Part shown: positions 1 to 15,738 of the stretch, piece by piece
Numbering within the stretch: position 1 is the first letter of the stretch
Layout: each line of letters opens with the position of its first letter
Source: Zygophlyctis sp. KS116
Taxonomy: Eukaryota; Fungi; Chytridiomycota
Direction: 5' to 3'
Length of the DNA: 17,631 bases
NCBI GenBank assembly: GCA_054661495.1
Contig: BAAFSQ010000204.1
Location: 1-17,631, forward strand
Program-made: the position numbers and the translations under genes
Notes under the pieces: generated by a model
Database searches by the model: none
Told to the model about the DNA's origin: nothing
Seen by the model: the letters and a program-made list of their open reading frames with translations, nothing else

Positions 1-115
1 AGCTATATTTAGATCCCGGACATGCCGTTTTCTTTGAGTCGCGAACGTGGTTTGCCGTACTTTTCTCTGTTTGAAAGAGAAAATGAAATCATTTTATTTG
101 CAAATTTAAGATTCA

Positions 116-1327: not shown

Positions 1328-2027
1328 TTATGGAGTAGACTGGTTATTTCCATCTCTTCTCATAAATAGCAGATAACATTTAAATCTTTGTCTGATCATG
1401 CGTAGATTTTGACTCTCTTGAGTAGTCATTTGTTCCTGATATAAAATTACAGCATCTGAATTTAAAATCAAATTATTACCAGATTTGCATAATGGACATA
1501 AAGGCGAAAATCTAGTCAACCATGGATCAATACACTTTTAATAAGTATAAATAGTTACATTCTTGTGATAATAATGCCGACATGGAAGTTCACGAACTGA
1601 TTCGCCAAGACTATACTCTTGCAAACAAATTACACACTTGTCCGAATCTAAACATAATTTTCTAAAAATTACTATTTTGACCCGACTCTTGATTAATTTG
1701 ATCCTCCTCTTTATCTACTGATAATGTTTCATTTGATGCATTTGATCCTAGAGCCGTAACATTTACAGATTGAAATTCATATAATCTGATTGGAAATCTA
1801 TTTAGAACAGACTTTGTAACCATTCCAGTCTCTGAATGCAAATCTAAATTTGTAGGCCTTGATCTCCTATTATGTAACTTTAAAACAGCTCCCCAAATAC
1901 AAAATATTCCTACAAAAACTAGCATCGTAATATAAAATGCAAGAGCAACAACATCTCCTGGATAATATGCATTACTAGGATTTAGATCAGATTCATTGTA
2001 TAAAGCCTTGGAAAATATCAAAATCAT
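1328..2027 (-). CDS. Transmembrane RING-H2 E3 ubiquitin ligase (216 aa)
   Basis: Exons 2027-1673, 1647-1559, 1534-1328; introns 25 and 24 nt. Splicing rebuilds [42 protein letters not shown] (C3H2C3). One N-terminal TM helix. Start ATG overlaps the HAM1 stop. Confidence 0.9.
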
Positions 2028-2604
2028 TTACTAGGAAGCTTTTTTAAAAACTCTTTTAATTGGTCTACAGCTTTAAATCTATGAGAAATTGAATTTTTTA
2101 AAGACTTTTCCATTTCAGCATATGTCTGATCATATCCTAGAGGTTGAAAAATTGGATCCCCTATCTTTAATTTTTTAATAAATTACATCCAAAATTATTA
2201 TCACCTCTTGGTGGCACTATAGTCCCATTAGTAATACCTTTAAACAGTATTGGAGAATTTCCTGGTTCACAGTATGCAAAAGTACACATTGCATACGCAG
2301 AATGATCAGAGAAATTCTGAACCATTTTCCATAATCCTTGCGGCCCAATTTCTTTTAAAAACCATTTAATATATGGACCAGGTAATCCATTGAATGCATT
2401 AAAGCATAAACAAGTATCTTCAATGACAACTGTTCCTTGAATACGATCAGCCGCAGCTTTAGCTTTTGCAATTGTGACTTGTTCTGCTGATCCTTGAATT
2501 TCTACAAGATCTATATCTTGAGACTGTATAGAAATTGGAGAAAGAATGGCTTGAACTTCTTCTAATTTTTTCTTGTTTCCAGTGACAAATATGAGATTGT
2601 CCAT
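2024..2604 (-). CDS. HAM1: Inosine triphosphate pyrophosphatase (HAM1/ITPA, 184 aa)
   Basis: Exons 2604-2187 and 2160-2024; 26-nt intron 2186-2161. Motifs [21 protein letters not shown]; splicing restores FGWDPIF and the C-terminal ISHR. Ends ...LKKLPSK-TGA. Confidence 0.96.
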
Positions 2605-3117: not shown

Positions 3118-3528
3118 TTAAACCAATTTAGCTAAATTATCGGTGCATTCAATAAAGGCCTTGTCCAATGCACCCTTTAAAGCAAGTCTGTAGACCCAAG
3201 AGAATAATCCTGTAATCTCTACTCCCATTCTTAGATTTGTAGAGTCTGATCCCTCCAATTTCCAATACCATTGGGCAGATGCTCCAGGGAGTATAGTAAC
3301 ATAAGAAAGATAAGTGTCTTGTTCTACTTTAGAGATGGCAAACTTGAAAGATTGCTTGTTTTTCATGTGTAAAGTGCCACTAGTCTCTGCAAGTTGAGGT
3401 CCTGAATATTCTACACGTTCAATATCAGTGTCCCAAACAGGCCATTTTTCAATATCAACAATGATAGACCAGACTTTAGATTTTGGACTTTTAATCACAA
3501 TATCCCGGTAAATGTCAAACAAAAACAT
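3118..3528 (-). CDS. SRPBCC/START-like (polyketide cyclase/dehydrase family) protein (136 aa)
   Basis: Intronless ORF with the family pattern IKSPKSKVWSIIVDIEKWPVWD and a C-terminal amphipathic helix (...TDNLAKLV). Confidence 0.8.
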   Translation of the reverse strand: MFLFDIYRDIVIKSPKSKVWSIIVDIEKWPVWDTDIERVEYSGPQLAETSGTLHMKNKQSFKFAISKVEQDTYLSYVTILPGASAQWYWKLEGSDSTNLRMGVEITGLFSWVYRLALKGALDKAFIECTDNLAKLV

Positions 3529-3559
3529 TCTTGTAGCAGTAGGGTTATATATTTAACAC

Positions 3560-12974: not shown

Positions 12975-13274
12975 TCAGTATTTTCTATCTGCCCCTAGTC
13001 CATCTAAATCCATCATAGAACCAACATCAAATCCCAAATCAGTCAACTTTCCATCTTTAATATCATAGACCCAGCCATGAATATCCAATCTCTGACTATT
13101 ATTCCAAACTTGTTGTATCAGCGGCATACACGATAAATTACGAACTGATGCCAATACGTTTAATTCAACCGCCATCTTAAACTTTTCATTAAAACTAGAA
13201 TCCGACTTTAAGATTTCCCCTGTATTAATTTTAATATGAGAGATCCATTCATCTAAAAGACCAAAAGCGGACAC
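12975..13274 (-). pseudogene. Beta-carbonic anhydrase, C-terminal half only (5'-truncated)
   Basis: GLLDEWISHIK, VELNVLASVRNL, IQQVW and IHGWVYDIKDGKLTDLG are beta-CA C-terminal motifs. In-frame TAG lies just upstream. I found no C-x-D-S-R or H-x-x-C zinc-ligand exons in 13275-13565. Confidence 0.75.
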
Positions 13275-13565: not shown

Positions 13566-15738
13566 ATGTCAAATTCTAATCTGATTATTTGGTTTCAGCT
13601 CTATGACTCTGAGACTGGTCTTCCATACAAGGGAACTAGAGCTTCCAAGGTGTCAGTTCCCGTTGGTTCTGATATAGTAGACTTTTCTGATGCTGTCAAA
13701 GTCAAGTACTCTGACAGTCATTTGAAAGGTATTGGTCCTTCTGATCTCGAGGTCTTTCAGAACAAGCAATCATTTGATAAGAGAGATGCTGAAGAAGACA
13801 AGGTAAGTCCATTCATATTCTTATAATAGGGATTGCCTCTTGATGAAGATTCTCCAGTTGATGATCTTGGAAAGTCATTAAAAGATGCTCTCATTGTCAG
13901 TCTCAAAGGTAAACGATAGTAAAATCTTAAAAGTAGACAATCGCACAGAAATTGACTCATTAGCTTCTCCCAGAAAGAGAAGTCTGGCTGTTGATCTACC
14001 AAAGCAATTAAAGAAAAGAAAAGGTCTCATTTCTCCAAATTTACTTGGCACATCGGGCAGCGACTTTTTGTTTTCTGAAAGAGATCGGTCATTTAATGTG
14101 CTTCTTGAAAACACAAGAAAGAGATATAAAGCTCGAAAAGGTGGAATTTGGGATAAGTCGGTTCATCCTATTCCTTTTCTTGCTAATGGACCTGGGAGTG
14201 GGAAATCCCGATTCTTGCAAGAATTGTCTGGATCGTTTAAGGACTACGTCCAGAAATCTGATTCAAGTGATGAATTCAAAAAGATTTTCAATGAAGCGCT
14301 ATTTATCAATATAAACTTTGGGAATGGGACTGCGTATTCTATCGCAGATGTTGAATTAGGAATTGAAAAAGCTATATGTGTGCGGATTCTAGATCAGGTC
14401 GACCCTGTCAATGGCCGTGCATTTTTGGCGCAATGTGATAGAAATATGGAGATCGAAAGTCTCTTAGCTTTTACTATTGAAAAAGTATGTGGGGACGAAT
14501 ATAAATGTCTTGTTCTGGCAATCGACGAAATCAACAAGATCCATGCAAGCAACGAAGCTGCATTTAAAGAACTATTCAATGTCGTTGGTAAGCTATCAAG
14601 TTCATGCTCGATATTTGTTGTACCAGTTGTTGCTGGAACCGTGGTTGGTCCGATTAAAGACTTTGTCTCTAAGTCCATGCATCCTCCCTGTCAAATTCCT
14701 CTCCCACTACTATCTTTGGAAGCATGTAAAAAAATACTGAAAAACAAGATGCCCGAATTAGATACTGAAGATAAGCGATTTATACAAGTAGTATCTGATA
14801 TTGGAGGACATTGTCGCTCGCTGGAATATCTTTATGATTTTTTGGATTCCAAAAAATTCAACAAGTCCTTGGATGGCTATTGGATTGATGCCGGAATTAA
14901 TGTTCGACTGCAGATCCGGAAATCTTACCGTATAGATCATCCTGCACTTGGCCATGCCATAGCATATTCATTTTTATCTAAGCTTGTTCGTCCAGTTGCA
15001 AATGTAAAAGAAAATACAACTTTCTTGGATCTAGAAGAAGCAGGGCTCATCCAATTGGAACCAAGGGAAACCAAATTTGTGGTTAAAATTCCTTTTATGT
15101 TTGTGTGGTGTTACATGCAGGAATATGAAGATGAGGATTATTATTGCAAGTTCTGGACTAATATACTTATCGGCAACAAAATTGGTTGGCAGGAATGGGA
15201 AGTATTCAATCGAAACTATATTGCATTTCGGCTGTCTTTGTATGAATTTCTAAGTATTAAACAAGTCTCTGTAAGTGAATTTTTCCAGGGTGCCATTGTC
15301 AATTTCTCTCAAGATATAAATTTCAAGATTCCCCCATTTCAACAGATCAAAATTACAGAGTTTAAACACCAGTATCCTACAACCAAGTCTTTCAAGCCCG
15401 AGATTAGTGCCGGGACGTGTTTCTTGAACGCCTCTGGTGCCAAATTTGATGCTGGCGCTTGGCTTGAAACAGCAAGCTCTCATCGTATTCTTCTAGTGGT
15501 GCTACAAATGAAACTTTCTAGAGGAACGAATTCTTTTGGTGCCAAACTGATCAATTCAGAATACCAAAAAGCCAGACATGTTGTCTCTTCAAGCACAGAT
15601 TTTGTTTTTGTGATGCTTTGCCGCAGAAATGGTAAATTTAAACAGACAGATCTTCCTGAGAATGCTGTTGTAGTCTCAAATGCACAGTTACAAGATTTTT
15701 ATGGATATTCATACTTCCAGCGATTAAGAAAGGTATAA
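13566..15738 (+). CDS. Crinkler (CRN) family effector: ubiquitin-like header + P-loop NTPase + REase-fold nuclease (706 aa)
   Basis: Exons 13566-13802, 13830-13908, 13934-15738; introns 27 and 25 nt. Header IWFQLYDSETGLPYKGT...DFSDAVKVKYSDSHLKGIGPSDL...PLDEDS...DALIV. NLS-like PRKR...KKRK. Walker A GPGSGKS, Walker B LVLAIDE. Nuclease-like NASGAKFD...LQMK. Confidence 0.9.

Follow-up and report, generated by a model that had tools for sequence, protein, structure and literature searches.

HAM1 and a RING-H2 gene joined by an ATGA overlap: one of many near-zero gene junctions in a compact chytrid genome

On the minus strand of the window (the whole 17,631-nt stretch of Zygophlyctis sp. KS116 DNA analysed here), the stop codon of a HAM1 gene and the start codon of a RING-H2 gene share the four nucleotides ATGA (2024-2027), an arrangement shared by strain L003, which is 97% identical. 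This raises the question of whether the two proteins are made from one bicistronic mRNA or from independent genes whose transcripts overlap. The initial annotation named both options, reinitiation and a promoter hidden within the coding part of HAM1, and likened the overlap to a bacterial coupling signal. Its description of a 4-nt overlap with zero intergenic DNA is accurate: all coordinates hold, and the intron and the start codon involved are backed by orthologues.

HAM1 was identified as a full-length Ham1p_like (ITPase) protein from two exons, each of which was searched separately against Pfam and for homologues. Exon 1 (2187-2604, minus strand, ATG at 2604) matches positions 1-148 of PF01725 (E 9e-37) and exon 2 (2024-2160), with its TGA at 2026-2024, matches positions 150-186; together they span the whole model and score above the curated cut-off (127 + 44 bits). 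Removal of the 26-nt GT-AG intron between them (2161-2186) restores the sequence G-W-D-P, which is uninterrupted at the empty intron site of L005, L006, L007 and L009, and an intron occupies the identical site in L003 and L004. The C-terminal frame reads K-K-L-P-S-K-TGA. In a tree of HAM1 proteins, the window's sequence belongs to a clade of seven environmental sequences that has good support, with L004 as its sister at moderate support. Homologues within the clade are 66-82% identical, and the best matches from named species are 60-62% identical. HAM1 shares a 123-nt divergent region (2605-2727) with RPL34, whose ATG lies at 2728 on the plus strand, and the genes for HAM1, RPL34, a mitochondrial carrier, a PPR protein and PRKCSH are kept together in the window, L003 and Gorgonomyces haynaldii. 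Protein matches, the tree and this synteny suggest an uncultured freshwater chytrid close to Rhizophydiales.

The RING gene continues on the same strand. Exon 1 (1673-2027) encodes a short N-terminal tail, one transmembrane (TM) helix (approximately residues 26-50) and a conserved DLHS-x-x-G-x-V..RFP motif, as judged by alignment and hydropathy. It is followed by a 25-nt intron (1648-1672) that has no counterpart in L005-L007 or L009, by exon 2 (1559-1647) with the first half of the RING-H2 domain (C, C, C, H, H; zf-RING_11, E 1e-9; zf-RING_2, E 2e-8), by a 24-nt intron (1535-1558) whose position is identical in all relatives read, and by exon 3 (1480-1534), where C-I-D-P-W..C-P-L-C completes the C3H2C3 pattern. 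A further 24-nt intron (1479-1456) precedes exon 4 (1328-1455), which ends in a stop codon (1330-1328) 34 nt from the convergent neighbour. Read exon by exon, the protein combines C3H2C3 zinc ligands with a single N-terminal TM helix, and is a predicted type III membrane RING-H2 E3 ligase. It shares the short N-terminal tail, single TM helix and C3H2C3 RING with single-TM RING-H2 ligases lacking a PA domain, which are exemplified by the plant ATL proteins. We know of no functional link between HAM1 and RING proteins.

The RING start codon was placed at ATG 2027-2025. The following in-frame Met is codon 35, which lies within a hydrophobic segment (residues 22-53), and a Met is found shortly before this same segment in all six close RING orthologues, as well as in distant orthologues without linkage to HAM1. 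In addition, the N-terminus resembles that of L004 and the ATG is positioned as in L007. Judged from the location of codon 35 and the placement of Met in the orthologues, ATG 2027 is the likely start, which bears out the earlier choice of this codon on the grounds that the next Met falls in the TM helix; no orthologue begins at a later Met. The length of the N-terminal tail varies approximately three-fold among lineages. The HAM1-RING pair is syntenic only inside this clade, and the distant RING orthologues are head-to-head with other genes. Scans of JGI metagenomes returned no RING relative, and only distant HAM1 loci without an adjoining RING gene.

HAM1 is followed by RING in all seven lineages of the clade, with stop-to-start gaps of -4 nt in the window and L003, +18 in L004, +4 in L005 and L006, 0 in L007, -11 in L009 and +50 or +59 in L030-L035. 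The RING start thus lies between -11 and +18 nt from the HAM1 stop in six of the seven. Gene order at this junction is conserved but the ATGA geometry is not, and a conserved -4/-1 geometry of the bacterial type was not found among these orthologous gaps, which range from -11 to +59. The proposal of a bacterial-style coupling signal is therefore not supported by a lineage-specific ATGA born of a frameshift. In L030-L035, the spacer contains a mini-ORF (L030, 1021-1079; L032, 1019-1068) of 16 or 13 codons, which differs by a 9-nt indel between strains.

The origin of the ATGA can be read from the relatives. HAM1 ends with K-A-S-stop in L004, L006 and L007 and with K-A-stop in L005, and DNA alignment with L004 locates an older stop (K-A-S-TAG) at 2031-2033 on the minus strand of the window. 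This TAG is now out of the HAM1 frame; it is followed by TAA and then by the RING ATG in one frame, which places the relict TAG 3 nt ahead of the ATG. Relative to L004, 4 nt are missing just upstream of the old TAG. A 4-nt deletion put the HAM1 tail in a new frame and added two codons, such that the first stop encountered is the TGA of ATG-A, while the older junction consisted of a stop, 0-4 nt and the ATG. An assembly error in the run of A residues was rejected as the source of the deletion, given that L003, an independent strain, carries the identical deletion. A slippery-looking T-TTA-AAA / A-AAA-AAG run before the stop was also dismissed, as a -1 shift there would reach only the old TAG. 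In the sampled genome ATGA occurs at 56 of 126 starts (44%), and with A so common at position +4 a shifted frame would often end in ATGA by chance; only six of 25 TGA stops have an A in front. From these alignments, the ATGA is a recent, derived frameshift accident and the absence of a spacer as the old trait. L009 also has an ATGA at -4, but out of the RING frame. Given the close spacing, the overlap is no more than chance.

The close spacing itself is a property of the genome. The assembly comprises 12.7 Mb in 1175 contigs, from which a 218-kb sample was taken (the window plus one 20-kb piece of each of the ten largest contigs). Genes were called with a small ab initio gene finder trained on this sample, which may fuse close genes and did so in one known case, a glycosyltransferase and a START gene. 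By these calls the 218 kb are 92% genic. The sample contains 484 called introns, 98% of which are 22-33 nt long (typically 24-31 nt, mode 25-26, approximately 2.2 per kb). AAG acceptors are frequent (104 of 484 introns), and the presence of introns at the same sites varies among relatives. The median tandem gap outside the window is 85 nt, and lengths between -1 and 120 are represented almost uniformly. There is no significant excess of -4/-1/0/+1 gaps (the initial annotation had named the lack of a genome-wide -4/-1/0 excess as refuting its proposal): three of 58 tandem gaps lie between -4 and +1, against 2.0 expected once the readiness with which ATGA and TAATG arise is corrected for (P=0.33), in a small sample that is also compatible with a two-fold excess. 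With the window's own two junctions added, P falls to 0.075. Gaps of up to 16 nt make up 14% of the total compared with 5% under a crude additive model.

Other junction types are similarly compressed. The median convergent gap is 22 nt, with overlaps in five of the 32 convergent pairs, while eight divergent pairs have their ATGs within 62 nt of each other, some only 27-40 nt apart, such as Tom22 and an AAA ATPase (34 nt) or pICln and a PPC-decarboxylase-like flavoprotein (35 nt). These head-to-head pairs are beyond the reach of any coupling, so promoters and UTRs must be tiny or lie within neighbouring coding DNA; at every junction type the intergenic DNA leaves too little space for UTRs, as in other compacted genomes. 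Near-contact also recurs between other tandem genes: COG4 and a histone deacetylase share TAATG (gap -1; L016, 4408-4411, plus strand), malate synthase and an unnamed 885-codon gene share TGATG (gap -1; L018, 6422-6424, minus strand), and NMD3 is separated by +1 from a GT49 enzyme (L016, 7167, minus strand). Pfam matches confirm these junctions and mark the first and last pairs as distinct genes. Tight spacing is present in a cultured species too. In G. haynaldii (GCA_025526955.1, JAHLJY010000011.1; L008, 4953-5547), HAM1 lies 48 nt head-to-head with the PPR gene, an unrelated 641-aa gene begins 10 nt downstream of HAM1, and the PPR-PRKCSH gap is 22 nt. The HAM1-RING junction is one instance of genome-wide near-zero spacing between ordinary genes. 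The initial annotation had also pointed to a missing AATAAA after the HAM1 stop. None is indeed present within 400 nt, nor after the RING stop, but this absence is uninformative, since only 28 of 122 genes (23%) have an AATAAA within 100 nt past their stop.

RNA evidence from this organism comes from metatranscriptome contigs, which cover RPL34 and part of HAM1 exon 1; a search of metatranscriptome runs found no RNA from the organism at 1328-2434. The 25-nt intron of RPL34 is spliced out in four lake metatranscriptomes, which indicates that the tiny introns are real in this organism. RPL34 contigs extend back to 2712, and one reaches 3136, antisense to the convergent gene and past its stop at 3118, although DNA carry-over is possible. 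The only loose 5' end on these contigs is adapter-like rather than leader-like.

We consider it reasonably probable (roughly 60%) that the RING start site lies inside the last codons of HAM1 and that the two transcripts overlap, as in microsporidia. HAM1 and RING would then be independent genes whose intergenic DNA was lost in an ultra-compact genome. The RING mRNA would start approximately 20-40 nt upstream of its ATG, within the end of HAM1 exon 2, and be translated by ordinary cap-dependent scanning, while the 3' UTR of the HAM1 mRNA would necessarily enter RING coding sequence. Some HAM1-RING read-through RNA could be made without serving as the RING template, perhaps in the manner of mushrooms (PMC4503453), and the ATGA is a by-product of the 4-nt deletion. 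Across the sample, the 40 nt ahead of starts are the only stretch in which out-of-frame AUGs are scarce, with 8 and 18 per bin compared with approximately 30 (the last bin is slightly shorter); this suggests leaders of 20-40 nt. Room for such a leader exists inside HAM1, where 82-105 nt separate the RING start from the closest preceding AUG in the six short-gap lineages. According to PMC3629993, itself citing Williams et al. 2005 (PMC1182411), Encephalitozoon transcripts often start inside upstream genes. Of the two options in the initial annotation, the buried promoter is thus the one favoured here, with a start site placed from leader length. The HAM1 tail yielded no promoter motif, which counts against this option; a k-mer search for promoters gave weak CG-containing words, none of which survived multiple testing, and synonymous conservation is not raised in the HAM1 tail (0.52-0.64 in the last 20-45 codons versus 0.65-0.66 in the rest of the gene). 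An A-run followed by a G-C/T-C/T-T word (2034-2048, minus strand, in the window) is retained by most lineages 5-20 nt ahead of the RING ATG and is read in differing frames, or is non-coding, depending on the lineage. It occurs at three of 126 starts genome-wide and is a candidate start-site element.

The main competitor, to which we give distinctly lower credence, is an obligate bicistronic mRNA on which ribosomes that finish HAM1 reinitiate at the RING AUG, tolerating distances of approximately -11 to +18 nt independently of the ATGA. The retention of the start within this range in six of seven lineages, despite the three-fold variation of the N-terminal tail, is what such a mechanism predicts, and the mini-ORF in the L030-L035 spacer continues the HAM1 frame, terminates in a TAATG at the RING start and stays in frame across the 9-nt indel. 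However, this mini-ORF may be a former HAM1 tail left by an insertion, and the AUG that opens it, 9 nt past the HAM1 stop in L030-L035, would meet a reinitiating ribosome before the RING start. The COG4, NMD3 and malate synthase junctions and the surplus of gaps of up to 16 nt fit reinitiation as well, but there is no -4/-1 spike among the sampled tandem gaps, and short gaps persist equally at the convergent and divergent junctions of the same relatives. Similarly, upstream tails at tight junctions are poor in AUGs (p=0.012, n=12, HAM1-RING included), a depletion equally expected of a 5' UTR. Fungal ribosomes reinitiate at the hypovirus UAAUG (PMC2699510), whereas on cellular mRNAs long ORFs are seldom followed by reinitiation, and then at a low level, approximately 82-fold lower for CASQ2 (PMC5972666).

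A viral-type TURBS element was rejected, with neither a nearby UGGGA nor a conserved fold. A UGGGA within conserved structure was not found shortly upstream of the HAM1 stop: the motif occurs solely at -178 and -138, where the latter copy is imposed by the codons for G-W-D, and a UGGGA is present in the last 200 nt of 33 of 117 genes. Fold z-scores of seven sequences (-1.3 to +0.5) gave no conserved structure. The stop-start spacing of TURBS (up to approximately 14 nt) is seen in the window (-4) and exceeded in L004 (+18) and L030-L035 (+50/+59). A broader version, in which a few percent of this clade's nuclear tandem genes are expressed bicistronically by reinitiation after full-length ORFs without TURBS, would make HAM1-RING a conserved example whose start is tied near a stop, including through the bridging mini-ORF of L030-L035; we regard it as slightly less probable still than obligate coupling at this one junction.

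The remaining explanations carry little weight. The gene models could be wrong, either because 2031-2007 is spliced, so that HAM1 ends with L-P-S-F-I-Q-stop and the ATGA is intronic, or because HAM1 and RING are fused, which we think improbable. The 25-nt stretch 2007-2031 (minus strand), which contains both stop and start, does run from GT to AG, has the modal intron size and a common donor, and has a score that ranks in the 11th percentile among called introns, a level matched by 2.8% of exonic decoys. Nevertheless, its splicing would delete the only usable RING start and leave HAM1 out of the RING frame, and the stretch has no counterpart in L005-L007. It is probably unspliced, and its alternative splicing also appears unlikely from these features. 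As for fusion, TAG-TAA stops read-through from HAM1 into RING, and a word-based, length-limited search found no HAM1-RING fusion protein among homologues. Marginally less credible is co-transcription followed by RNA processing, by cleavage or spliced-leader trans-splicing, into monocistronic mRNAs. Trans-spliced operons do have zero spacing between genes, and most lineages have an AG 3-8 nt ahead of the RING ATG. The acceptor would nonetheless fall within HAM1 coding sequence in the window and L009, AG is not enriched before starts in the sampled genome, and the sole loose 5' end on the RPL34 contigs looks like sequencing adapter.

Least credible of all is a bicistronic mRNA translated by leaky scanning of the green-algal type or from an IRES. 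Leaky scanning is established for nuclear genes whose ORFs lie close together (PMC7896298, PMC11892635), yet a ribosome would have to bypass the 15 AUGs in HAM1 of the window (14-18 in HAM1 of five lineages) and up to 56 in the upstream genes of other tight junctions, and algal bicistrons, unlike HAM1, are AUG-depleted before ORF2. Leaky scanning was rejected on this AUG count, and an IRES is disfavoured by the lack of a structured element in the HAM1 tail.

Among known systems, the junction is most likely comparable to overlapping transcription in compacted eukaryotic genomes. As described in PMC3629993, Encephalitozoon cuniculi, Antonospora locustae and nucleomorphs likewise have very short intergenic DNA, short leaders and transcripts that end or start in neighbouring genes. 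The present genome differs from these in being intron-rich and 12.7 Mb in size, and in having stop and start codons in contact at the coding level; transcript overlap is suggested here by one contig, for RPL34 only. Read-through polycistronic RNAs of Agaricomycetes also combine tandem full-size ORFs with conserved order, and their downstream gene is also transcribed by itself, as would hold for RING under the reading favoured here, but their mean inter-ORF distance is 364 nt (PMC4503453) compared with approximately zero here. Viral termination-reinitiation (the TURBS of caliciviruses and influenza B; the UAAUG of hypovirus CHV1) shares the AUGA/UAAUG geometry, a long upstream ORF and a start within approximately 14 nt (PMC5972666), but the HAM1-RING geometry is unconserved, with no TURBS near the junction and no conserved structure. 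Green-algal bicistrons (PMC7896298, PMC11892635) are conserved, close tandem nuclear pairs with introns as well, although their ORF1 is short and AUG-depleted, in contrast to the AUG-rich HAM1. A literature search turned up no publication on polycistronic expression of nuclear genes in chytrids.

The ATGA itself is of little import, and what matters more is the architecture of introns of approximately 25 nt, 92% genic DNA and touching gene ends, which extends microsporidian-style compaction to a lineage that retains many introns. Such a genome offers many natural junctions at which overlapping promoters could be told from true reinitiation; the latter, if true, would add a rare instance in which nuclear mRNAs support efficient reinitiation beyond long ORFs. 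Tight junctions also mislead gene finders into fused or truncated genes. The 31 nt that separate a GT2 glycosyltransferase gene from a START-fold gene (3529-3559, minus strand) are readable as a weak 40-nt in-frame intron, but a fusion is unlikely, as the genes are separate in relatives with gaps of 47 and 15 nt.

Further junctions of the window were recorded. Two membrane-protein genes without a Pfam match are 62 nt head-to-head (716-777), and 57-62 nt apart in relatives. The window's second zero-gap junction involves a carbonic anhydrase remnant (12975-13265, minus strand) that comprises only the C-terminal half (Pfam positions 81-156) and abuts the next gene (from 12974); two complete copies are found on contigs C239 and C21. 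The frame of the remnant is open, and its 5' half has been replaced by approximately 300 nt of non-coding DNA adjoining a Crinkler-like gene. This remnant, abutting the next ATG, provides a natural test of an internal promoter versus reinitiation. The neighbouring 706-codon gene (13566-15738, plus strand) has three exons, a Crinkler-like N-terminus identified by eye without a Pfam match, and a weak ATPase_2 match. A similar N-terminus is encoded on contig C3, and the gene is probably a mobile member of an effector family.
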